A stretch of 63,962 bases of DNA, filler included, from Choristocarpus tenellus KU-1152 (taxonomy: Eukaryota; Protista; Phaeophyceae), in NCBI GenBank assembly GCA_964200185.2. It is 9 parts of 9 records of this genome, joined end to end, with 100 filler letters (N's around TTAATTAATTAA, not from the genome) between each part and the next. Parts side by side here need not be neighbours in the genome. Positions count along the whole stretch, not along the records: positions 39,459 to 57,080 come from CAXNAD020000649.1; 8 more parts are not named here. One strand, given 5' to 3'. The position numbers and the translations under genes were made by a program. The notes under the pieces were generated by a model. The model was not told the origin of the DNA. It made no database searches and was given only the letters and a program-made list of their open reading frames with translations. Positions within the stretch are counted from its first letter, which is position 1. Every line of letters begins with the position of its first letter. Of this stretch, positions 39,201 to 57,080 are shown piece after piece.

Positions 39201-39545
39201 AACCTTCGTAGTGTAAGATACGGAGAAGGAGGTTCATGACGCCATCGTGGCTGATGGCGTTCCTCGGTACATGGTGACGAACGATGTGGCTTCTATGTGT
39301 GTAGGCGGTGAAGTGTCGCGAACGCACGCCGCGCTGTTTTTCGTGCCACTACCTTCTCNNNNNNNNNNNNNNNNNNNNNNNNNNNNNNNNNNNNNNNNNN
39401 NNTTAATTAATTAANNNNNNNNNNNNNNNNNNNNNNNNNNNNNNNNNNNNNNNNNNNNACATTGTTTGGGGGGTGGGTGGGTTTGGGGGGATACTTTTTG
39501 TTCCATATCCTGAATCTTGAACCTCGGGGCGGGGGTGGGGGAAAG

Positions 39546-40127
39546 GCCACATAACTCGGGTCACTACACCTATGAGGCGTGTGATTGTGACCAGTTTGAA
39601 AACCACATCAGAGCTGTGATGGGAATGCCATTGGGGGGGACATCGCTGCGAGTAGGGGCAAGCCTCATGCTTAACATCTTGGGAGAATCTGGTGTATCCA
39701 TGGAGGAAACGAAGGGAACACTAGCTGAGATTCTTAATATACAAGGTTGGTATTATGGTTTGGATTTTTGTGGTTGATTGGGTGAATCAGTATGGGGGAG
39801 AGGGGAGGGGGTGGGGGGGGGCAATTGTGCTTGTATTAATTATTGACTTTTGACAACGTGTTGATTTTGAAATAAAATCTGTTGTCTGATTTGCTTTTTC
39901 TGCATTTCTTCTTATTGCACACACTGTGCTCTGTATTGGCGTAAGGTAGTGTGTGTGATTGATGAGGATTTCCTCTCCACTTTTCTCCCTCATCAATGCA
40001 TGCCTCCCAAATGGCAAATGGTGCAGGAGCTTCAATCCATGGGTACAGTAAGGGGGAGGTACGGCAAGGATGCAAAATGGGCCATGTTACTTTCTGTGCA
40101 ACCAGTCTCAGCAAGATATGGAAGAGC
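39546..40127 (+). pseudogene. purK: purK/ADE2 (AIR carboxylase ATP-grasp domain), two C-terminal exons (39546-39745, 40027-40127)
   Basis: RPHNSGHYTYEACDCDQFENHIRAVMGMPLG...MLNILG; GASIHGYSK...GCKMGHVT (consensus HWYGK...GRKMGH altered); phase-1 GT-AG intron. Confidence 0.85.
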
Positions 40128-42433
40128 GTGAGTCCCAGTATGTTCTATTTGTGTTCTATTTATTTGTCCCAACCCCCCCTAATGTATATGGCTCTATCAT
40201 GCCTGAGTCCCTGCCCTCTCCGGTCAATTGGGTATACTCAAGCCTTAGAGTTTTGTGGACTCACAAATGTATTCATGCCTTGGCCACCTTTACCTTCAGT
40301 GTCAATTGCAGGGTAATGTGAAGATTTAGTTGGCCTGATGTATAGAGAAGTACAATTTTTGATAAGGGTACTGTGAAAGGCCACTACAGGACAATGAAAA
40401 CACCACAGGTCACATTGAATGAGCTTGGGGGTGGGGGGGGGCGGGAAAGATGATCGCGCATTGTAAGTTTTGTGACCAGTTCCAAAATAAATAGTAGCAG
40501 CCTGGAGGCTAGCTCAGGAGCGGTGTCCTTTAGGCTCTTTTTCTGGCCTCAAGTTGTAGGTGTATTTTACTGACCACTAGACAGTTGTCCAGCTTGGAAG
40601 TTGGAGATCTGTGTTCAGCCAAAATATTTGTGTCCCTAGTAAGTCTCAACATATGTCCACTTTTACTTGGTATGTATGTGTATTTTCCGTTGGAGGCAAG
40701 GGAGGTTGAGGGAGTGGAGAGACACAGCATAGCTGATTGAAATTTTGCCATAATGAATGCCTTGAGATAATGGCCCAAATAGAGGCAGTGAGTAATCAAA
40801 GCAGGGGGATTGAGAGATGTATCTGAAGAAAGGATGGTGGGGGCTTGATGCCGCCAGACTTACTACCCATTAATTAGGTCATGTGTTCCCATTGACTATC
40901 CAGTCCCAATGTCCACATTCTTTTTTCAATTTTGGTCCTGAGGAGGAGAGATGACTGCACTAGCAACACTACCGAGTATTGTATGCCTGAGTAGCTGTCT
41001 TTGTCAACCCCTCTTTTTGCATTTAATTTTCCTTAAAGTTACTGAGCAGAGTCCATGTCTGGAAGTCCTCAAGTGCAATCACCGTTGGTACAACCTTTGC
41101 CCCCAACCCTTTCATATAGAAGAGCGAGCTTTACACACATTGCTCTGCTTTACTTTCAACAAACCAACAAAGCAAGTTCTATCTAAATTGGCTTACCATG
41201 CATGTTGCACAACCTGGCAGGTAAAAAGTACCTAAGACACATGCAATAGTCCTCAACACGCATCTTGCCAATAACTCCCAGCCTAGCCAATGCCCAGTCC
41301 AAGCCAAATCACACAAGGTGAGACCAGAAACAAGCCCCCCAAACCTCTCACCACTGGCACCAACTCTAAAAGTACAAAATAGACCGGCCAACACGCAAAC
41401 AACAACCGGAGGGATCCCCTGGTGGAGAGGAATCTATACAACCCGAAATTATTGAACTGAAAAGTATGACCGGAGAGTTGTGGTTCATTGAGAACCAAGA
41501 ATGAACGAAATTGCCATTCAAAGTTTGACCGATTATAGATGTGAAAAAATGCTTGTTTCCTCCATCTGTCTCAGCTCTTGGAAGAAAGGAACACTGCAAT
41601 CACCGTGAAAGTCCCTGGTAATGTGAGCTGTTGAATAAAAAATAATGTACACAGCTCTACATGCACAGCAGAATGTTACTTTCCATAGTTGAACACGCCA
41701 CTCTTGAATTGCACCGCATACGGATCCGACTCCTGGATGCGATCTCCCAAGTCTGAGGATCAACTACAGGGAGATTCTTCAAGGCTGCTTTGTCCCTCAT
41801 GTTTTAAAATAAAATAAAATGTTTCGAGTGTGTGTACTCTCAATGAAAAAAATCTAACAGTCGGGAAAAAAGCAATCTTTTCATATATACATATATTTCA
41901 AATATCGTTTTTTAGAATTCGTGCAGCAGTAGTGTCACTTAGACCTAGATGCCAAGGTAAGGCAGGCAACCATCAAATTTTTTACTTCTTGAACTCAAAA
42001 CAATCACAGTCAGGATTTTGATTCTAGTGCCATTCCTGCTTCTCAGCAGATCAGTCTGTACTACGAGGTAAAGGGAAACCAAAAAACAGTACACAAAATT
42101 AAAACAAAACACACAGAGAGAGCACAACTTGAACACCTACCACAACAAATATCGCATGAAACCACAGAAAAATTCCCAGATAGGAATATGTGGCATACTA
42201 GTGAAAATGCAGGTATCATCACCAAGTCCAATGAACATACAAGTCAAGTGGCGGCACTTCACAATTAACACAGCAAATGAGCACTATAGCACCTTCTTTA
42301 AAGTCCTCTTTATTATTGTAACCTCTCTGACAAGGTGGCAGGCGGTACTGTGAATGAGTGCTTCAAAAAATATCAAATGTCAGCACATATCAAGGGGCAT
42401 TGGAGGCTTAGGGTGAAGGACCCACACTCTCAC

Positions 42434-42605
42434 CATAATGGCCAGCTCCTTCTCATAGTCAACCCACTCTTCAACATAGAGCCCTCCCCACCTAGCCCAT
42501 CAAACGCTTGGCCTTGAGCATCAGGGGATAGCCAAACACCTTTCCTGCCTCTCGGACAGACACTACAGTTGGGGTATCCATGTACTGGGGCATGCGCACA
42601 CCATG
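42434..42605 (-). pseudogene. purK: purK/ADE2 internal exon with deletion and frameshift
   Basis: cag|HGVRMPQYMDTPT...GKVFGYPLMLKAKRL // LYVEEWVDYEKELAIM|gtgag; YDGRGN segment missing. Confidence 0.85.
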
Positions 42606-42710
42606 CTGAGGGGGGGAGAAAGAGAGGAAGGGTAAGGGAGAGGGATGTGAGTCGCACAGGCACAAGTGCTTCAGCTTACAAAAACATCTCCGAATTTTAC
42701 ACTAACCTTT

Positions 42711-42818
42711 GTGAATATCCTGTCTGCCCTGGAGGCTAGGGGACTCAAGGTTCAGCCAACCTCACATACAAGCTGCACGATCCAGGACAAATATGAACGG
42801 AAACAGCACTTCAAGCAG
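42711..42818 (+). pseudogene. purK: purK/ADE2 exon fragment, inverted duplicate
   Basis: VNILSALEARGLKVQPTSHTSCTIQDKYERKQHFKQ|gt. Confidence 0.82.
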
Positions 42819-42897
42819 GTACAGACTCCCCTCCTTCTCTCAGTATACCTTGAATATACCGTCTGCAGGGTATACTGAGGGAAGGGGGGGGTCTGTC

Positions 42898-43025
42898 TTG
42901 CTCGTAGTGCTGCTTCTGTTCATATTTGTCCTGAATCGTGCGGATTTTATGTGAGGTTGGCTGAACCTCGATCTCCACTGTAATGACGTCGCAGAGGTCT
43001 GTCAGTTGGCTGCAATGTTCAACAT
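42898..43025 (-). pseudogene. purK: purK/ADE2 exon with internal deletion
   Basis: LTDLCDVITVEIE//VQPTSHKIRTIQDKYEQKQHYEQ. Confidence 0.82.
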
Positions 43026-43445
43026 CGGTCAGTGGGGGCAAGAAAAGGGCCTTAGGAGGTATGCGAGCTTTGTAAGCTGATATTTCCGCATGCAGCAGAG
43101 AAGTTTCAACTACCTCCAGCATGAAGCTGATTTGCACGTCCAAAAAGAGTAACCTTACCTTTCCTGATCAGATCAATTGATCGTAAGGAGCACAACATTT
43201 CGGATACCAAGCTTGGGTCATATATTCCACGTCCTAGGGCGAAGAGAACGTCCATGTCATGCTAGTCGCTGTATGTAACCAAAGTTGCAATTGATGGCCC
43301 ACTTTGAGGACGAAAGACGGGTTGGTGCATCCGTTAAGTACTAGAGAGGTTGTCAAGCATCACCCCGAAAGTCATTCAATGGGGGGTAGCAGATGACTAA
43401 GCACAGATGTCCTCTCAGCCGATAACTCAATCTTAATCGAATCCC

Positions 43446-43604
43446 TTAGCTCCCTTCAACTGCCAGTTCAGTCACTTGTCCAGCTGGGAACACCTTCCCC
43501 AGTGTGTTAAGCACGGTCAGAATAATGCCTAGGCGGTGGGCTGCCTCAGCCATCATGCCACCCAACTGGCCACCACCAAGCACCCCAACCGTTCTGGGGT
43601 CCAT
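43446..43604 (-). pseudogene. purK: purK/ADE2 first exon
   Basis: MDPRTVGVLGGGQLGGMMAEAAHRLGI... (consensus GGGQLGRM), ends in TAA. Confidence 0.88.
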
Positions 43605-44255
43605 AATCGAGCGATGAATGGGGAGGTAACAAGGATTTGAGATTGAAGGAGGAGGGGTGTAAGATATGTAAGTGGTATTCTCGCCACGTAGCACTACAGA
43701 GCATATTTTGATTTTATTGTAAGTATGAATTGTGTGATTCCGTGGTGACGTGGTTCCCTCAGGTAAGGGTGGCAAAGAGAATCACCGGGCAAGACGAACC
43801 AGACGGACCAAGATGAACGGTAACCGAGAGGATGAGGTTAAGGTTGGACAAGTGCAAGACTGCAAGGACTTCCAGACAAACTGTGGGATGATGAGAATCT
43901 TCCGAGAGGGAAATCATCACAAATTTCCGAAGTAATGCATATACCTAGTTACAGGGATGTGGATTACTTGTGGGATTGGTTTCTTGCACAAAACTCCCCA
44001 CCTCAATTATTTGGAAGATTCTCCACTGGAATCAGAAAATCCTGACAAGGAAACCCCAATCGGTATGATGGTATTTGATGTACGGCATTAACAGTATAGC
44101 AACAGGCAAACATGCTTTCCACATCATTCCCCCTTGTGATCGACCTTGAAGGTATTTAGACATGATTCAAGGTCATACAAAAAGTGAGCTCTGGGAGTGA
44201 AATGGGAAACATGTGTGATTGTTAGTATACTATGGTGCCACTCTATTACACGACT

Positions 44256-44691
44256 GAGCCAAAGTATCTTAGAGGGTAGGGCCGCGTCCATTTGGGGGTC
44301 AAAATTCAATGTTGCGATTTTGATGTAATTTTGGCTATCGTGTTTGTTAGGAAGTGTGAATATCCTTGCTCTAGACACAGTTTTTCATAATGTACACATT
44401 TTATAAAGGGTGGAATAGATGCTTGGTCTAATATTATAGATTCCAGTATAAGAAAATATTAATGATAATATGGTAAAGGGTCAAATTTATGTCAAACCAA
44501 GAATTAGAGCAACTAGCAGATCGATTGCAGAAAAGTGATGAGTATCTTGTTGTTAGAAAATACCAAAAGCCTAAAGTTTACCTACTCCGAAACATTTTGG
44601 TGTAGGAAAATGTCATAAAAAATCCCATGGGAAGCCAAGCTCCAAATGGACAAACTGGGCAAAACTCGTACCCTCTAAGATATTTTCACTC
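44256..44691 (+). mobile_element. MITE family A nested in the LTR element, carrying a ~177-bp foreign insert
   Basis: Both TIRs present; 4-bp TSD gact/gact; longer than the family norm by the insert at 44404-44580. Confidence 0.88.
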
Positions 44692-45200
44692 GACTCCATA
44701 AATGAAAAATGAAGTGTACTATATAAATGAGGCACATAATAAATATCTGATCAGGATAACATTAGCCTAATGTTGATGGTGTGTGGTCAGCGCACCAATC
44801 AAGCTTACGAGGTCTGAGAGTATGGGATCAGGATATCAATCAGCCTAGAGATGGGGTGAGAGGTATGTGTGGCCATAATATAGGGTCTCTATTATCATGT
44901 ATAGAACAGAGGATATACTCAGAGTGGGGATACGAGGAGCAAATACTGTATGATGTCACTAAAGGGTTTGACCAGTGTTTGTGATTCGACATTGCTACGC
45001 AGGTGTTACACGATTATTTGATCACCACTTTGATGTGTGAAATAACATCGCGTGTTACATGACCATATCAACACAGCAAGCGACGAAATCAAATGCGTGC
45101 ACCCATTCTCCTTCGTCAATTCTGACATCGATCGGAATATGGCTCATGATGACTACAGTATTCCAAGTGGGCAGCTTGTAGGTACGATGTTGGTGGCTTA

Positions 45201-45432
45201 GAACCAAAGTATCTTAGAGGGTAGAGCCGCGTTTATTTGGGGTTCTAAATCCAATGTTGCGATTTTGATGTAATTTTGGCTATCGTATTTGTTAGGAAGT
45301 GTCAACATCTATGTTTAGGACACACCTTTTCATAACATACACATTTTACCTACTGCTAAACATTTTGGAGCAGAAAAATGTAAAAAACCCCATGGAATCA
45401 AAGCCCCAAATGGACAAACAGGGAAAACGATA
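45201..45432 (+). mobile_element. MITE family A, right end lost
   Basis: GAACCAAAGTATCTTAGAGGGTA start and family internal sequence. Confidence 0.82.
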
Positions 45433-46702
45433 GGTTACAACATTATGCCAATGCATGACATGCAGACTATGCAAAGGAGTATTATAACAGTAAATACAAA
45501 TTCTCAAGTCAACACTGTGTGGGACGAGAATTTTACTGGTTATCCAGTCCATTTACTGCATGATAGGCTGCAATCATTTAAAGGCATTGTGGGATCTGTT
45601 CTGTCTTTTTGTGAAGATCACAGGATGGTCCATAGCCACAAAGATTAAAGCGATAGATAACATTAGTAGCTGAACGATGACCAGGACCAGGCCTATGTCC
45701 AATGATGCTATCAATAGTGTATTGGCCAATAACAGATTGAGAGATTTGATGGTCTACATCCAGTAATGGTAATGGTTTTCCCAGGAACAAATAATCCAGT
45801 TCATTCAAATTTGGTGTGCGAGGTTGGACTTGTGGATAGTAATGCTTTATTCTACCCAGATGAACGGAAAAGAGGCGTGGGTTTCCGGGTAGTACTACCC
45901 TGTATATGATAGGTGATACCTTAGGATGTACTTCATACAGACGCCTCCAAAGGTGAAGTAACTTCAGATTCGGACCATCAGTTCTCTCATGCGGCATATG
46001 GACTAGAACTTGATCACCAGGTACGAAAACGGAGAACTCGAGATGTTGGTTGACACGCTCGTGATTTTTTACGTGTTTATGGAGATAATGACGTGCCAAC
46101 TCAAAAGCAAGCTGTAAATTATCTTTGTTTGCTAAGTAAAATCTTCAGTAGTAACATCTGAATCAGCGTTAGACGAACCAAGGATAATATCGAGAGGCAA
46201 AGGAGCTTGTCTTCCAAACAGAAGGAAGAACGGAGTTTTATGCAACTTTTTACTGAATGCTATGTAATGGGTAACTGTACAAATGGCAGTAACAATGCCC
46301 AGTTATCCTCAGCAACAGAGATATACATTGTTAGCATAGAATGCAACATAGCATGTACTCTCTCTAACACAGAGTTTCCTTGGGGGTGATACAGTGTGGT
46401 TTTGGTTTTCTTGTAATCAAAGACTGCAACTCTGCAACAACACTGTTTTCAAATTCGGTATCTTGATCGGAGTGTCACAACTCGGGTGGACCAAAAATTG
46501 AAAATACATGTCCTACCAGTGTATGAGCATTTGTTGCGGCATCTTTATTTGGAACAGGACTCAGCACAACAAAACGAGTGAGGTGATCAATAGCAGATAA
46601 CACATATGAGCACACCACACCGTTTGCTGCTGGGGAACGTGTTTTGTACCCTACCAAATCAAGAGCAACACGTTGAAATGGTCCGTCAACGGGCAGGCCA
46701 GT

Positions 46703-46959
46703 GAGTGAAAGTATCTTAGAGGGTACGAGTTTGGCCTGTTTGTCCATTTGAGGCTTGACTTCCCATGGTTTTTTGCATGACATTTTCCTACTCCAAAATG
46801 TGTCGGAGTAGGTAAAACGTATAGTTATGAAAAGGTGTGTCGGGAACAAGGATATTGACACTTCCTGACAAACACGATAGCCAAAATTTCATCAAAATCA
46901 CAACATTGGATTTTGGCCCCCAAATGGACGCGGCCCTACCCTCTAAGATACTTTGACTC
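46703..46959 (-). mobile_element. MITE family A inserted in gypsy integrase
   Basis: Near-perfect TIRs; TSD cagt/catt; removing it restores the frame TTLPTGLPVDGPFQRVALD. Confidence 0.92.
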
Positions 46960-49074
46960 CATTGGGAAGTGTAGTTCTGTTGCAAGTAGTCTTATGTGTT
47001 TGGCATGCTTGACAATCACGACACCATGTATGAACCTCGATATTGAATGTTGGTCACCAATATGAGCCTCTAACCTTATCGAACGTGGGTTTGAAACCTA
47101 AGTGACCTCCAGACAGTGCATGGTCATGACAACCATGGAGTACAAGATGGACTAACAAGCAAGGAACGATCAACTGGACTCTAAACGTGCTCCTCTTATG
47201 AAGATGGCCTGGTAAATGGGACTGATACAGTAGGTCATTACGAAGGAAAAAATACGACATAGACATCATATATTCCTTATCACGTGATGGGGCAACATCG
47301 AGGGATTGCAAATACCTGAAATATGGTCTGAACTCGGATTCCTGCTACTTGCGCAATTGATCCAGGTCCACTGCAAAAAACAGTAGTGGAACCAGTAAAT
47401 AGGTCATGATCACTTTGGACGGTTGTTGCTCTTGCCAATCAAGGATTGCACCCAAGGCCTCCAGGATACTATTGTCAAGTAGTATTTTGCTGGGACCAAG
47501 TTCAGGAATTGCTCCACTTCTCTCCAGAGGTATTGAATCTCTCTTTGGGGTGGTATGAAGTCCGAACGAGGAAATAGCATGGGAGGGGGTGACCACGTCA
47601 ATGAAAAACCTTGTGGGCATCTTCCCATGACGCTGGAGAGGTTATAATGGGGACAGGGGTGTCAAGAGAAGACTGCAATCTGGTCAATTCACTTGTTGAA
47701 CGCCATTCTATTGTATCAGTCAACACCTGAAAGTAGAAGGTTTCGGCAGGTCCTTGAAGAATTGTTGGTAAAGATTCTACACAACAAGCATCAACCATTT
47801 CAGGGGATGTAGGACTGTACTGACTAGAATGCAGGGTGATTGCAACGCGCCATTTAGAGAACAGAAGTGGCAGATCTTCTTCTCCAGAACCTGTGATTGT
47901 CAGACCAGTCGGGATTTCTGAAGTGGAAAATCTAAAATGGTTCCCTTCTGACATTGATTGTGGGTATGAGACATCGCTACTCTGTTCATCAGGTTTCGTG
48001 CAATTGATGCCATTGCCCTGAACTTCAAGCTTCAACAGATCCTGAAGTCATTCATGAGGCACAGTTTTTGTTCTGGCAAACTCATGCACAAGATGTGCAA
48101 TGAAGTCTGGTACAGCATCTCCGAACTGAGCCTGTGAAATGACCACAAGTAGTGGAACTTGGAGGTGGGACAGGATCGTCCTGAAAATGGACCTGACGAG
48201 TGTCACGGTCGCCCGAGCTGACACGTGCTCAAAGGTCAACAACACGGTTCCTGCATGACCACGACGATCTGTTGGGGAAGAAGGAGAGGACCTTCATCTA
48301 CGACCAGCATTTCTTGTGTTATTAGATGATGAGGATGAGTGACTGAACGTATCGGAATCATGGTTTGTTGAGGATTCCATGTCCTCTATTGACTCATGCT
48401 CATCAACCTGTTCCTCTAATGATCTTGCTTCCTCCAATTGTTGAGTCAGGCGCTCTAGTTCAGGATGCTTTCTTCTTGATCTTGCGTTTGGCATCTTCAG
48501 TCAGCAATCAAACAAAAATTACCCGTCACCCTATCTCGGAGCCGACCAGTGTCACCAACATGAATAGTGTGATTCTGTGGCAACGTGGTTCCCTCAGGTA
48601 AGGGTAGCGAAGAGAATCACCGGGCAAGACTGATCAGGCGGACCAAGATGAACCATAACCAAGAGGATGAGGTTAAGGTTGGACAAGTGCAAGACTGCAA
48701 GAACTTGCAGAAATATTGTGGAGTGACTAGTGATGCGAATCTTACGAGAGGGTAATCATCACAAAATTCCAAAGTAATGCACATCTCTGGTTACAGGGAT
48801 GTGTATTACTTGTGGGATTGGTTTCTCGCACAAAATTCCCCACCTCCATTATTTGGAAGATTCTCCACTGGAATCAGAAAATCCTGACAAGGAAACCTCA
48901 ATCAGTATAATGGTATAACGGTGTATGGCATACGGCAATAACGGTATAAGCGCAGAAAAAAGTGCTTTCCACATAAGTGAGAAATTCCAGTGTGGTTGTG
49001 GTTGTGGACAACCACTAGACCTCTACAACAGTAGTAGTCCCACATTGATTACGTCCTCCACACAAGTAGCTGAG

Positions 49075-51820
49075 ATGGGGGATGACATGAGCAATGATTG
49101 GGAGGGCGATTTGAAGGATGATGGTGATGAAGATGTCGCTAGTCCTGAAAGAGAAGGTGCGCTTGGTATAGGTTCTGCAATGGTTTCCCTCATCCTCCCT
49201 CCAAACCTGATATCGGCTCAGAAAATTTGGGCTGGCTATTGTATTCCTTGAATCTCCTTGATACCACCAATTTTTTCCTCAGGAGAGACGACGTCTAGTC
49301 TGAAAGAGGATTCTAGTGCGACAGATAGAGAAGGTACCAAGGGTAAAAGGCGAGGTAGGGCACAATTGGAGACTGGTGACATGGGAGAGGAGGGTGAGGG
49401 AGATGGGATCGGGGTTGAAGGACAGCGAGAGGACGAGAAGAATAGAGAAAATGAGTTAAAAGAAGCGCGGCGTGCGAAAAAGAAGGCCAAGCTGAAGGCC
49501 CTGAAGGCAGGTTGGTTTTGAGAGGTGTGCAACTTGCTTGAAGACTCGAGCCTTGCACTTCGAAGTGAAACAGTTGGTCGACATAAGTCGTTTGTAGGTC
49601 TGTCTGCAATAAAGTCTTTCGCTTTTTTGTTTATCTTGCCATCTGGGTAGAGGAAGGCTGCATATTTGCACCCTTTTGCACAAATAATGGAAGTCCTTGC
49701 AACAGCATGTTGGAGGCTGCCGTACGTTAGTGAATCCACATGGACATGATGGGTTATGTATCACGAAGTCTCGAGACAACCGATTTCCGTTCCTTGCATA
49801 TGATTGGGGAAGGGGCGCATTATTTGCTTACAATAAACTTCGCTGTCCTCTGGCATGTTTACTTCTGCCACCTCAGGCCAAGCTCAAAGAGAAGAAGAGG
49901 GCGTGGACAGAAGGGGAGAAATCTTCTCGTCAACCGGGTGAGGGGAGTGGGACAAGAGCAGAGAGGACAGGAGCTGGTGGGGTAGGGGAGGAGGATGCGA
50001 GGGAACTTTGGGTGCAGTTCTGCAAGGTCCAGGGAGAGGCAGTTACGCCGCTCGAGCGAGATAACCCTTGGGTCAGGGCGGAATCCCTTGCACATGTGGA
50101 GGGATTTGGAGCGCACACCTTGCCCAAGCTTGCAGGATTCATCAAAGGTGATTGACTGTGTTGAGTATAGACCATGACCTCTGCTATTTATTGCACTGAT
50201 ACCGTTCTGAAGCACAGCAGTGCCTGGAGGAGAGTTACAAATATGCAATGCAAGTCACGTATAGCATCATCCCACCTTCCCCACCCCCAGTCTTATTCCG
50301 TCTACTTCCTGTCATCACTTCATTTCTTTGAAATAAAAGACTCTTGGTTTGTTGTCATTGTCAACACCTTACTGTCCTCGCCCATCTACCTATTGGTCTT
50401 TCTGGACCGGTTGACATGTGAATCAACAATGGTGCAATTGAAGTCTGCCCAATAATGCATGGGCCCACCTTCTCTATGCCCCAGTCTTATTCTATCTACT
50501 TCCTATCTTTATTTCACTTTCCTTGAAGAAAGCATTGCCTGTCAACCTCGCTGTTATGAAGGCCTGTTGTCCTTGCTCAACTACTTGTTGTCTTGTTGAT
50601 GTGTGAATCAATGGTGGAACTGAAGCCTCTGTGGTAGAGTGGAAGTCTAAGCTGTCAAAGGACGCCGCAAGGGGAAGCCCTACAGTGTTGGTTGTGTGCT
50701 CAGGAGCAAGACGCTGCGTCAAGGTAAAGTGTGATCTTGCTGCCTACCCTTGTGAACTGCTTGGTATCATATGTTGAGAGTGCCTTTATTACTTCAGCGC
50801 TGAAAAGGAAGGGTTGGACTGAGTTTGACTTCTAAGAACTTGAACCCAGCAACACCTTGTGATACACAAAAATTGTCAGAAGTTATAGAGTATTAGAGCA
50901 ACAACAAACATGGCGTCAGTAATGGTAAGGTGCTACAGAGTACCAAGTATCAGTGTCTGTGTGTAACAATCTTCTGAGTAGTGTTCCTTGATATAGTTGT
51001 ATTACTGTATTACTATTAATAGTACGGTGCACTTGAGTAGACTGATTGGGTAAAACTAGTTACCTTGGTACTTACATTACCAGTGCAGCTAAGACTAGCT
51101 GTAGTTTAGCCTCCGGAATGTCTGTGACTCCACCACTCTGGTACACTATGAACAACAACAATGTAACAAGGTTTTGTTTGCAAAATGATTTATGACCCCT
51201 CACCCAGGTCAGTGCCATGACATCCTTGGTGATAGAGAAGTGTACACTGTCTTGTGTCAATTTTACTGACATTAAGGCCTGCACCATCTCTTTGCCCGTA
51301 TGCCCCTGCAGAAGGCATAATTGCAAAGTCCCGAAAATTGTAGACCGTGTATGAGTTATGGACAACTCTATTCTATCCCATTTGACGTCAAATGAGGAAT
51401 GTGATAGAAGAGTCTGACAGATTTTTCTCTTATTATGTTGCATTGTCCTCTGACTCTTGTACATTGTTCCTTGCCATGCACCCAAACCAGGTGATCAAGG
51501 CCCTGACAGCCTTCAGATGTCAGGTATTGAAACTCTTTGCCAAACACCTCAAGATGGATGAGCAAAAGACGATGCTTAGGAAGGCCTGCTTCCCCCTGGC
51601 TGTGGGCACCCCAGGCCGCATGAGGCAGCTGGCAAACCTGGGGGCTTTGCAGCTCAGTAGCGCTACCCTTGTGGTGTTAGATCTGGAAAAGGATATCAAG
51701 GGTCGAACAGTGCTCAACATGGAAGGTGTGGCACAGGAAATGATGGGACTTTTGGCTGAATACATTCGGCCAAAGCTGGTCCCATATGGTAAAGGGAAGT
51801 TAAGGCTTGCCATGTACTAG
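49075..51820 (+). CDS. CMS1: CMS1/CMSS1 (90S pre-ribosome factor, DEAD-box-like fold); exons 49075-49156, 49283-49506, 49877-50147, 50626-50723, 51491-51820
   Basis: GSPTVLVVCSGARRC, KLFAKHLKMDEQ, AVGTPGRM, LVVLD..KD.K motifs; exon phases consistent from ATG to TAG. Confidence 0.88.
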
Positions 51821-53753
51821 TGGCTCAGGGATGTGGTTGTTGAGAAGAGTTAGGGTGGATGATGTTGCGATTGAGGGAAATGGGTTGGTGATCGGTTACA
51901 GGCATATTGATGGGGGGGAGATGGGCATGTTTCTTGTGGAGAGATGTAGTGTTTTAGAGTACCGAGTGGTACGATGAAGAATTGCTTTTCTTTCAGAAAA
52001 CATGGCATTTGATCAGGCATAGATGCGAGTTGCTGTTGTCTCTGGAATTTGGAGGGAGATGCTGTCAATTGGCCTCTCCTTTACCCCACCACTTCTCACC
52101 TTTTTGGCAGAGCAGACCGAGAACAAAATGTCCATATACAACCTTGTTGCTAACGTAGGTTGTCTCCATAAGTGGAATGAGCTCATGCAATGCACTTGTG
52201 ATTGCTCTCGCAAACTCCTGGGGTGGTTTCTTTTATCATTGGATACTTGAGTGTATGGTGGTTGTAGCGTATACCTAGGTAGTGAAGTGACCCTGCAGTA
52301 TCAATCAAGAACAGAAAAGTACGCTAGTCTGGACCTACTTGCAACCTGTTGGTGCCTTTGTACATTTTTTGTTACCTCTCTCTGTCCAAATAAATACCGT
52401 TTTGCAGAAGGTTTTGGGATGCAATATGTTCCCCTCAAGGGGTACAGAAAATCTACTTTGGAGTATGTGAAATGGGTGACAGACCCTTTTCTGAATAAAC
52501 AATATAAACCAGAACTGGATCCCACTAGGTCAAGTGCTGGCTGTGATGCTGGTGCAAGCAATTACAATAGTAGAAGTTCCCAACCCTCACACTGTTGTGT
52601 TGTCTTGTGATGTACAGAGTATAACTGGTGCCTTTGGTCACTTTGATGCAGAAATGTGTAGACCGTTGCACCTTAAGAACACAAGAGGAGGTACAAACTG
52701 CTCTGGATGAGGGAGACCAAGAACAGTTAACTCATAGTCCCTACTGTAACTTTGTCCGCGTTTAATAAGGAGGTTTTGTCGAGTACTATATCATACTTGA
52801 TCCAACTTCGGCAAGTCTCAAATATGCGTTCATTCATATGTTGCAATAGAGGTGCCAATCTCTTGCGAGTTGCTCCTTTTAAGTACACCATCCACATCAA
52901 CCCCCTTGTAATTAACTTTTTGTTACAGTGCCATAGATCAATCGGGAGAACTTGAATCGCAAAGAGTAAAACATGGACGCATTGCAGTAAGGGGTGTGGA
53001 TCTATCTGTTGTTGGGATCACCATCCCAGGGAGTACAACGTGTGAAAACGAGGTCACACCATTATCGTACAACTAAGTGGTATGCAATGTGGTTGGTCAT
53101 GACCGTCTCGTAGAATTCTACCCAGACTCCTACAAGTTTATCCGGTGAGAAAGGTCTTCAATCCGCGGATGTTCACCTTGCGTGTTTAACTGGACACCAT
53201 GACTTTCCCACTAAAGTGATCTATATTTCCTCACAGGCATTTGCGCATTCCTTCTATTCCTTATCTCATCCGTTTGGGGAATGGTGATAATATCCCTCGT
53301 TGAACCTACTTTCGCGAGTGATTACAGCTAGCCACCTCAAGATGAATGCCCTCTCACACCTACAGCATTCTCCAATCTATCATAGATGTAAAATGGTGTA
53401 GAGTAGATATATTAGAATGGAGTATTTGACTCCTTGGACAACTTAACACTTAACAATATGTTATGCCCGTAACACAACAGTCAAAAAAATCCAACTTGTA
53501 GTGCCCTGGACACTCCAGACCAAAACATACACAACACTGTACAATGCTCGTGACATTCCGGTACAAAACATGCGTAGCATGCGTTACCATTTTACACATT
53601 ACGCCTTAACACAAATTTTATTTTCTAAAATTGTGTTACGGTCTAACATAGTGCATTTCACGTTATTTGAATGAAACAGGAATAATATTGCACTGGTTAT
53701 GGACACACTTGACAGATAAAAATATCTCTCAACGTCTTATTCAGCCGTGCTCT

Positions 53754-53930
53754 CGCTCAAAGTATCTGGGTGGGGGTGGTGGCTGTCCATTTGGGGTCAA
53801 TTTTTTGATATCGTGATTTTTGGGTGATTTGGTTGCATACGTCAGATGGATAATGTAAATGCACTTTTCCTGATTTTGGGTCAAATGGACACTCTGGTGT
53901 AGACCCCCCCCCCCCCAGATACTTTGGGTT
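53754..53930. mobile_element. MITE family B, complete
   Basis: TIRs CAAAGTATCTGGG/CCCAGATACTTTG; TSD tct/tct. Confidence 0.88.
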
Positions 53931-55229
53931 TCTGTTTCTGCTTCGATGTTGTGTATGGCGATGACTTTGATGTGCGATGATAAATCCAGATGTTCTATCT
54001 ATTCCTTCAGTTGATGTTGTGAATCTCGTACAGTAGGTACCTCTCAAATATGCAAGTTCACTTATGATTATGATCCACAAGATGTTACGTTATTCAGTGA
54101 TAATAACACAAAATGTTGCAGTGTTACAAGACCATATTTTTTTATGACACAGCATGTATTGTGTTGCAAAAGTGTAATAAAAATGTTGTCCAAAGTGGCA
54201 AAGGTGCGAAGCCCATCCCCAGCATACACACCGATGCTTGAAAGAACACAACCCTGCTCACCTGCATCTGCACCAACTGCACCTTCGTCAGTCGTCTCAT
54301 CTTCAAGGGTGAGGGGAGGCTCCACGTTTAGCGGGTGGAAGGTGACCCTGAGGAGGCATTGTTTGCACTGGCATCTTTATTCATCCCAAGCAGGCTATTC
54401 CTGCGATACTTGAATGAATTTGTGAGGAAGTTGAGGGTGGACGGAGGCTTTTATGGCATGCCACATGTCATGTTTATTGATGAACACACATTATACACAT
54501 TGAGCTGGTTGCCATAGAGTACACCTCATGAAATTGCATCTTTCTTTGTCGATTGCCAGTCACCCACGCCTCAACACACACCTAGCCACTGGAATGTGTG
54601 TGTATGACATGCTTCAAAGAGAGAGCAAACAACAATCTGTGCAGGTGTTCACTTGATATCACTGGTGCTGTATCAATTCATAAGCGTGGCTGGTCATGGA
54701 TTATGTAGAGCACAATATCTGTAGCCTAGAATGCCATGAGACCACCAACTGCACCTCTGTGCCCTCTTCATCAGGCCCCCTAAAATCAAGCCCGCACCAA
54801 CCCCACAGAGCCAGCATGGTCTCTGTCCCCCTCCTGTGACAATCTCCTGAGGCTCCAGCAGGTGCTTTCCTAGAACCCTATCCCATCCAATAGCATTCCT
54901 CTGGGCTACTAGGAGTTTCATTGGCTATATGTGGGTGTTTCTAATGCTTTAAATGATCCAAGCCCCAAAATGGAAGTCTGGTCCTCTATACCCTCGGGTT
55001 CATTTTTCGATTTTTCGTGTTTTTTTTCGACTGAGTGTGCCTTACAAGAGTGAACACGATTTTCGTTCAAAAATCAGGCAGGTGTAGATAACCTTTAAGG
55101 AATCAAACTAGTGCACCAACCAGTTTCTCAATTGGCTGTCTTGGCTAAGGGTAATAAATATTCAAACTTTACTCCTTCTGTGGTCCTTAAAATACCCTTT
55201 TTTACGTCTCTTGATGTACATATGTGTGT

Positions 55230-55540
55230 GTGTATCAACATTCGTTGATCCGTGGAGAAATTGGCAGAGCATGCGAGCCACGCACACGTGCAGTGCAATA
55301 TGTGTCGAGCAAACCATTGTACCTCTAAGTAACCAAGCAGATATCTTGTTATATACCCTTCGAAGTATTACGTAATACTAATGATAGTACTATCAAAACC
55401 TTTGCGGTGGAGGCCTTTGGGTGCCTTGGCACACAAGTAGAGCGATTTCTGGATAAGCTGGCGACTCATATTTTGGGTGGCAAGGGGGCAGAGGGTCTTC
55501 ATCGGAAGGGAACAGTGATGGCACACCTGCGATAGATTGG
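55230..55540 (+). mobile_element. 3' fragment of a REL-endonuclease (CRE/NeSL-like) non-LTR retrotransposon
   Basis: TFVDP...TFAVEAFGCLGTQVERFLDKLATHILGG...RKG. Confidence 0.55.
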
Positions 55541-55790
55541 GACAGAAAAGGTTAATAGGAATCTCCAGACCTGTAACACTTTTTAAACTGGAAACACTGG
55601 GTCGGTGGGCTAGGAGGGGCTTGAGTGGTTCGTAGGATTCTTCTCTCGCTTCTCTATTGCCTTCATAGTATCATTTAGGAGCAGTTTGAACTGTACTTGT
55701 TCTAGTAAGCTTTCTCGTTCACTTTTTTTAACGTAATATACTACAATTATTGGTGCAGTATATGATAGACCTTCACCATTGTGGTATTAT

Positions 55791-55969
55791 GACTCAAAGA
55801 ATCTGGGGGGGGTGGTGGCTGTCCATTTGGGATCAAATTTTTCATGTCACTATTTTTGGGTTGTTTGGTTGCATACGTCAAATGGATAATGCAAATACAC
55901 TTTTCCTGATTTAGGTCCAAATGGACACCCTGGTGTAGACCCCCCCCCGCCCCCCAGATACTCTGTGTC
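55791..55969. mobile_element. MITE family B, complete
   Basis: GACTCAAAGAATCTGGGG...CCCCAGATACTCTGTGTC; flanks tat/taa. Confidence 0.85.
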
Positions 55970-56841
55970 TAATGTATTCTTTACCTGGTGTCTCTCCTCC
56001 TACAGATAATGTAGATACTGTGTTGTTTTCTTTACATTATTGTGTTTCTTCCTTGCACCACATGGGCACAAGCATTAGGCTATGAAAACCCAAGAATTCT
56101 TAATCGTTTCATAATATGACCACGACATAAAGGTACGTTTGTCAGTCCTTGTAGCACTCCCCCGCTGGAATCTGATTCAAACCACAACACCAATCCTTCA
56201 ACTTCAACCTTCCTCATCCCCTCACCCAATATTCCTATAATATACGTTATTCTCGAACTTTTTTGTGTTGGTGTCAGATTTTGTGACCCCTTCGACATGA
56301 TGAACTCATTTCCATTTGGACTACCCATTTCTAGGTTTTGCACGTTTCCAGGGTAACGCCCTGGAATTTTATGGTGGTATGCTCGAAAGCACCACCGTAC
56401 GGTACGACTCATGGTTCATTTTTTCTGACTATCCCATGGTACATTACGCTATTATTATGTCCTCTAGTATTTTGTAGATGTGTCAGGGGAAAACCAGGTG
56501 AAAAGATCATTCAATATCAGAACCACCCCTGAAAAAGTAACATCTGTCGTAAATGTGAAAGATATTTTTCCATCATCTACTCCAGTATTTACTATTTTAC
56601 TACCAGCTATGCTACACCACTCCCCTCCTATGCCTCCAACCTAGCTTAGCCCTACACCCCAGAGCGAGGAGCTAGGGAAGCAAGAATATATGACATGCGC
56701 TTTAAGCTAGAGTCACCAGGGAGATGGGCACGGAGGGGTTTATTGGATTCTTGGGATGCCTCCCTTGCTCCCCCCCTGGGGCGCAGGAGTAGGTAGATGG
56801 GAAGCACAGGAAGGCAGTAGTACAATATTGATAGCGGTGAA

Positions 56842-57080
56842 GTGTGAAAGTGTCTTAGAGGGTATGAATTGTTCCCTTTTTGTCCATTTGGGATTTGGCT
56901 TCCCATGGGTTTCTTTATTACTTTTGCCTACTCCAAAATGTTTAGGAGTAGGAAAAATGTATACGTTATGAAAAGGTGTGTCCGGAACATGGATATTGAC
57001 ACTTCCTAACAAACATGATAGTCAAAATTACATCCAAATCGCAACATTGGATTTTGACCCCCAAATGGACGCGGCGCTAC
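56842..57080 (-). mobile_element. MITE family A, truncated by contig end
   Basis: Aligns with 46703-46959. Confidence 0.85.

Follow-up and report, generated by a model that had tools for sequence, protein, structure and literature searches.

The window, i.e., the whole stretch of DNA that was analyzed (63,962 nucleotides), is composed of nine joined parts of the Choristocarpus tenellus KU-1152 genome assembly, one of which (positions 39,459 to 57,080, from CAXNAD020000649.1) is the 17.6-kb piece described here. Two exons are found in this piece, a PurK C-terminal exon at 39996-40316 (E = 1.7e-08) and a CMS1 exon at 51392-51817 (domain E = 8.8e-15; ORF to 51820), the latter being 68% identical to the Discosporangium and Ectocarpus sequences and 41% identical to that of Phaeothamnion. 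By this one CMS1 exon the host is brown-alga-like; a green plant, the first guess from an atlas search, was given up after the protein search. An Rfam search of the piece returned nothing. Between the exons lies a degenerate LTR retrotransposon that encloses three of the four MITE copies found in the piece, and one of these copies is interrupted by a segment of bacterial derivation. The features are:

43725-48973, minus strand: degenerate LTR retrotransposon around MITE copies A-C, defined by its LTRs and target-site duplication (TSD)
44256-44691, plus strand: MITE copy A, which hosts the insert; terminal inverted repeats of ~23 bp
44400-44403, no strand: TTTA to the left of the insert, one copy of the MITE target duplication; a single TTTA is present in the MITE consensus
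44404-44576, plus strand: bacterial-derived fragment of 173 bp, 31% G+C (rhodanese 3' end, spacer, exonuclease 5' end), defined by blastn
44406-44462, plus strand: 3' end of a rhodanese gene, last 18 codons and TAA stop, a fragment only; alignment with 114-aa PF00581 genes
44463-44488, plus strand: 26-bp intergenic spacer of bacterial origin (22-25 bp in relatives), aligned with the spacers of all bacterial contigs
44489-44576, plus strand: start of a DEDD-type 3'-5' exonuclease gene, first 29 codons and one base, a fragment only; NF006615 and contig alignments
44577-44580, no strand: TTTA to the right of the insert, the other copy of the MITE target duplication; the bacteria read otherwise here
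45201-45428, plus strand: MITE copy B, with an "empty", uninterrupted site; 3' part truncated
46703-46959, minus strand: MITE copy C, with an "empty", uninterrupted site
56844-57080, minus strand: MITE copy D, with an "empty", uninterrupted site; cut by the end of the piece

The LTRs of the retrotransposon (43725-44123 and 48560-48973) are ~89% identical, and on the minus strand a purine-rich tract adjoins the boundary at 44124. Of pol, the element shows only a weak match to a Tf2-type integrase SH3 domain in the ORF at 45581-46099(-) (E = 0.0057). A first-pass annotation of this DNA had placed the MITE within an LTR element, which is confirmed by the 5-bp TSD TAAGT found on both sides of 43725-48973. 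Other repeats are also seen in the piece, i.e., an inverted repeat at 42745-42817 / 42899-42971 (73-nt arms, 88% complementary, 81 nt apart), which may be a foldback or MITE-like element, and direct repeats at 53769-53916 / 55805-55952 (148 nt, 88% identity) and 50285-50325 / 50479-50519 (41 nt, 83% identity).

The four MITE copies were aligned over 44230-44720 (+), 45175-45460 (+), 46700-46985 (-) and 56820-57080 (-). Extra sequence between ...ACACAT-TTTA and CCTACT... is present only in copy A, while copies B, C and D are continuous through TTTA (TTTT in one copy). The insert has a lower G+C content than the MITE (39.5%) and the whole 17.6-kb piece (44%). The alignment thus agrees with the first-pass description of an AT-rich segment in copy A that is absent from the other copies spanning the site; the segment is real, but its bacterial part spans 173 bp (44404-44576) rather than the 177 bp given originally. 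Its reading frames were also described correctly, i.e., a frame that ends with a TAA stop at 44462, a 26-bp spacer and an ATG at 44489. The first frame occupies 44400-44459, with the stop at 44460-44462, and the second is open from the ATG through 44581 and continues into the MITE up to 44605. The window's own 38-aa ORF has no entry in the assemblies index.

A bacterial rhodanese-exonuclease gene junction

At the DNA level (blastn), positions 44404-44576 are 83-90% identical to eleven bacterial contigs from marine metagenomes (best match 90.2%). All eleven alignments start at 44404 and finish at 44571-44576, the non-coding spacer being included, and the homology to bacteria breaks off abruptly at both MITE junctions. 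At the protein level, a phmmer search of 1.84 billion representative proteins with the 31-aa peptide of the second frame identified four short proteins with 65-87% identity and E values down to 2.7e-08. Because the peptide match has this E value and the upstream 85 bp, which were outside that query, are aligned as well, the bacterial match is not a chance event. The top match of the protein search (P0001), a 1745-aa tandem-repeat protein aligned over ten weak stretches, was discarded as spurious.

Each of these four proteins is encoded by the initial segment of a disrupted exonuclease gene, and all lie on bacterial contigs recovered from marine metagenomes (Tara Oceans and others). A rhodanese gene, or its 3' end, is located 25-56 bp upstream in three of these contigs (P0002-P0004), and the P0005 contig has no rhodanese upstream of the exonuclease piece. 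One relative originates from run SRR5788137, which is part of a published marine metagenome set (PMC6122167). Further contigs came from a 20-nt pattern that represents the beginning of the exonuclease gene, and from a word search in which a full-length relative served as query. The rhodanese and exonuclease genes are neighbours in each of the eleven related contigs, separated by 22-26 bp. Both are intact in L019, L038 and L043-L047, where the rhodanese (PF00581) has 114 aa and the RNase_T exonuclease (PF00929) 327-332 aa. The order GapR, rhodanese, exonuclease is conserved. The bacterial relatives sought for the insert have thus been found (eleven contigs at the identities given above), and every one of them displays the operon-style gene pair that had been suggested from the junction itself.

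The first gene of the pair is represented in the window by its end. At the DNA level the fragment aligns with the last 19 codons of PF00581 genes for 114-aa proteins (L008, L019, L038 and L043-L047), and the encoded peptide corresponds to positions 372-390 of 390 in the NCBIfam profile NF005646 (MoeB; E = 0.02), the C-terminus of MoeB being a rhodanese domain. A Pfam search with the 20-aa peptide alone gave no match. The homology covers the C-terminal strand and helix (GG-x-x-AW ... Y) of rhodanese-profile proteins; the active-site Cys loop is absent, the bacterial CHHG loop being encoded upstream of the captured piece. The original assignment of this peptide to a rhodanese C-terminus is accordingly correct, the gene product that it terminates being a separate protein of 114 aa that matches PF00581. 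A MoeB adenylyltransferase was rejected as the source of the peptide, because the bacterial gene encodes a single-domain rhodanese of 114 aa.

The second gene is represented by its start. The peptide corresponds to positions 13-41 of 307 in the NCBIfam profile NF006615, "3'-5' exonuclease" (E = 0.0013), and 27 of its 31 residues match the starts of the intact 327-329-aa RNase_T proteins P0025, P0032 and P0033. In an alignment of the window with Megaera/Rickettsia plasmid exonucleases and the marine proteins, residues L13, S16, Y19, Y25, P28 and Y31 are invariant, and the N-terminal leader motif of the subfamily, L-A..L..S..Y.V..KYQ.P..Y, is present in the fragment. The catalytic DEDD motifs are absent; with its end at codon 29, the fragment does not reach FLD-IE-TG, the first acidic motif of the full-length relatives. 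The proposal that this peptide is the N-terminus of a DnaQ-like exonuclease is therefore borne out by NF006615, by the intact 327-332-aa RNase_T proteins and by the Megaera/Rickettsia plasmid exonucleases. Most of the peptide sequence as first read also stands, but its last two codons (V, Y) belong to the junction and the MITE, where the bacteria have G-Y. A sub-threshold Pfam match of this peptide to DrrA_P4M (E = 0.06) was taken as noise.

Three changes within the 173 bp are unique to the window. Two are found in the spacer (an extra G at 44472 and a G at 44479), and the third, a T at 44547, replaces an Arg that is invariant across ten close bacterial contigs with a Leu. The AAAGGG motif, which had been likened to a Shine-Dalgarno sequence, contains window-specific bases that are not conserved in the relatives. 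In a tree of the 173 bp the window is placed inside the bacterial clade, between two marine sub-clades, with an end branch of 0.033. The small number of window-specific changes and the short branch indicate little decay of the fragment.

In the donor group itself, the exonuclease gene is often decayed (L003 2245-2834, L006, L008 422-855, L012 1945-2678, L002 3983-4965). In the Tara contigs it has broken up into pieces, and a 1-nt insertion is present in the rhodanese gene; in L008 an IS1 gene follows exonuclease codon 45, and the exonuclease gene is frameshifted in a lake Rickettsiaceae metagenome-assembled genome (MAG) and in a Ca. Megaera plasmid, where it is unannotated.

The donor lineage

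A full-length marine exonuclease (from L038) is 62% identical to a protein encoded on a plasmid of Ca. Megaera (Megaira) polyxenophila, and the closest named relative is a Rickettsiaceae MAG protein (78%). When plasmids were searched with the exonuclease peptide of the window (tblastn), only weak matches were obtained, to the Rickettsia felis pRF 3'-5' exonuclease and to a Ca. Megaera polyxenophila plasmid, the latter match being an unannotated, frameshifted exonuclease gene. A blastn search of plasmids with the insert yielded only a chance 22-nt match in Clostridium. A scan of GTDB genomes with the L003 rhodanese gave no confirmed relative. The 20-nt degenerate pattern had seven matches in the GTDB genomes, one of which is real, i.e., a contig of the Rickettsiaceae MAG (L012) in which the exonuclease is frameshifted and no rhodanese is found upstream. 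This entry (CAMCMD010000044.1) is titled "Rickettsia typhi"; it is from a lake sample and displays a Megaira-like HU ... exonuclease neighbourhood, and the species label looks wrong.

Gene content beyond the pair is informative about the type of replicon. In blastn, contig L003 matches Rickettsia and Megaera plasmids in the TraA, AAA-ATPase and exonuclease genes, and the 50-kb contig L046 harbors HU, ProQ, DsbB, TraD, ParB, a resolvase, a cold-shock protein and several transposases/IS elements near the gene pair. The L046 gene set is plasmid-like and resembles the HU / cold-shock / exonuclease stretch of Megaera plasmids. The donor segment was probably part of a plasmid region. In the Megaera plasmids and the lake MAG, the exonuclease is preceded by a gene other than a rhodanese, and the rhodanese-exonuclease junction is therefore specific to the marine clade.

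Collectively, these similarities establish the donor at the level of the family, which supports, to that level (Rickettsiaceae, Megaira-like), the earlier suggestion of an AT-rich intracellular donor. Because the best match in the collections searched is 90%, the exact donor, apparently a marine Megaira-like member of the Rickettsiaceae, is not among them. Reads sequenced from the brown alga Nemacystus decipiens have yielded a Megaira-related genome assembly (PMC10132079), so that an association between brown algae and the Megaira group has a precedent.

The junctions and the origin of the insertion

Directly after the last base shared with the window, the bacterial contigs read GGTA, GATA or AATA. 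Because they differ here from the window, the right TTTA is MITE sequence and the pair of TTTA sites constitutes a 4-bp target duplication. The first-pass annotation had noted TTTA at both junctions, which is correct, but had counted it within the insert, yet it is duplicated MITE sequence. A model in which the right TTTA is donor sequence joined by microhomology was rejected, as all relatives read G-[GA]-T-A or AATA at this site. The alignments hence establish the exact boundaries of the fragment and the target duplication in addition to its bacterial origin. They also establish the direction of transfer, from bacterium to eukaryote, because full genes are found on the bacterial side and a 173-bp fragment on the host side.

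From these comparisons, we consider it likely that 44404-44576 is a dead bacterial scrap, i.e., a two-gene junction from a plasmid-like region of a marine Megaira-like member of the Rickettsiaceae, joined into a brown-alga-like nuclear genome. No function is expected because the fragment contains neither a complete gene nor a catalytic motif, and, judged by its coding content, it is almost certainly without function. The insertion is found at a single point, the paralogous MITE sites are empty, and the 4-bp TTTA duplication is compatible with, though not diagnostic of, fill-in at a staggered break. We infer that capture of symbiont or plasmid DNA during chromosome-break repair is the most likely origin, where capture at a double-strand break is plausible. 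According to this scenario, DNA freed from an intracellular or closely associated bacterium would have reached the host nucleus, where the bacterial fragment could have been ligated by end joining, as filler, into a staggered chromosome break, and the TTTA duplication would then result from fill-in of the 4-nt overhangs. Microhomology and small deletions are more typical of end-joining capture than is a 4-bp duplication, and the details of the repair are speculative.

Filler DNA at repair sites often originates from nuclear templates. The 173 bp may therefore have been copied from a larger nuclear Rickettsiaceae block during break repair, or have spread by transposition of an insert-bearing MITE subfamily, rather than having been acquired directly from a bacterium. 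The ultimate origin would be bacterial also in this case, and the host sequence examined comprises 17.6 kb only, such that further copies may be present elsewhere. However, comparison of the 17.6-kb piece with the bacterial contigs revealed no other bacterial-like segment, none of the three other MITE copies carries the insert, and all relatives in public data are found in bacterial gene contexts, none with MITE flanks. A secondary copy is thus an unlikely, though the most serious, alternative to direct capture.

In the assembly, host sequence, i.e., the two MITE halves, flanks the piece on both sides. Symbiont reads are known in brown-alga sequencing libraries (PMC10132079), and a chimeric read or an error of the assembler could have placed sequence from a contaminating or symbiotic bacterium in a host contig. 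However, the segment is only 173 bp long, the two halves of one MITE are in perfect register, and the duplication is a clean 4 bp; chimeras do not re-enter one host element at the very base where they left it. An artefact is, consequently, very improbable.

Delivery of the bacterial fragment by a virus (e.g., a brown-alga phaeovirus) or by a gene-capturing transposon would be compatible with the mobile-element genes in which the donor region is rich, and integrated giant-virus DNA is present in brown algae. However, neither inspection of the sequence nor the alignments identified terminal repeats, a hairpin or other transposon ends on the insert, whose flanks are plain MITE, and a scan of viral contigs gave only two chance pattern matches, each covering 23-24 bases of the insert, on contigs that are identical to the metagenome loci L034 and L021. 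Of the alternatives to direct capture, delivery by a vector is the most remote.

Relation to known insertions of bacterial DNA

Nuclear insertions of endosymbiont DNA are known from insects and nematodes, where those of Wolbachia are referred to as "nuwts". In addition, homologues of rickettsial genes have been reported from the nuclear genome of Volvox carteri (PMC4324946). The insert in the window is a new example of this kind of event, i.e., endosymbiont-type bacterial DNA in a host nucleus. As in the nuwts and the Volvox insertions, DNA of intracellular Rickettsiales is found in a host chromosome, is non-functional and AT-rich, and is known by its homology to the bacterium. In contrast to those insertions, the piece in the window is very short (173 bp) and bridges two neighbouring genes. 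It lies in a brown-alga-like host and derives from a marine, Megaira-like donor, with a plasmid region as the probable source.

A second comparison is with filler-DNA capture at double-strand breaks, of which NUMT and NUPT insertions are examples. Capture of linear fragments at a double-strand break has also been observed in yeast (PMC1976456). The insert resembles these cases in being a short unrelated segment without transposon ends that is located at one point, with empty paralogous sites. It differs from them in that its source is bacterial instead of organellar or nuclear, and in that a 4-bp target duplication is found rather than the usual microhomology or small deletion.

The donor module itself is similar to that of the Ca. 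Megaera polyxenophila plasmids (AP017967, CP113870, NZ_CP104167), where an exonuclease of the same family (62% identity) has HU and cold-shock protein genes as neighbours. The difference is found just upstream of the exonuclease, where these plasmids encode a 95-aa hypothetical protein and the marine clade a rhodanese.

It is possible, albeit doubtful, that the scrap marks a recent or ongoing intracellular association between the brown alga and a marine Megaira-like member of the Rickettsiaceae, from which plasmid DNA leaks into the nucleus. If such an association does exist, further Rickettsiaceae inserts, possibly larger or expressed, would be expected in the same genome, and a macroalgal host would be known for the marine clade, which has been seen in plankton metagenomes only. 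In brown algae and their relatives, transfer from bacteria is usually inferred from old, assimilated genes; here, a base-resolved footprint of bacterium-to-eukaryote transfer is found. The insert offers a concrete reason to seek a Megaira-like bacterium in the host and more inserts in its genome, and the nested arrangement of LTR element, MITE and bacterial scrap, combined with the empty paralogous sites, may serve as a marker by which the association could be dated in different populations and in sister species.
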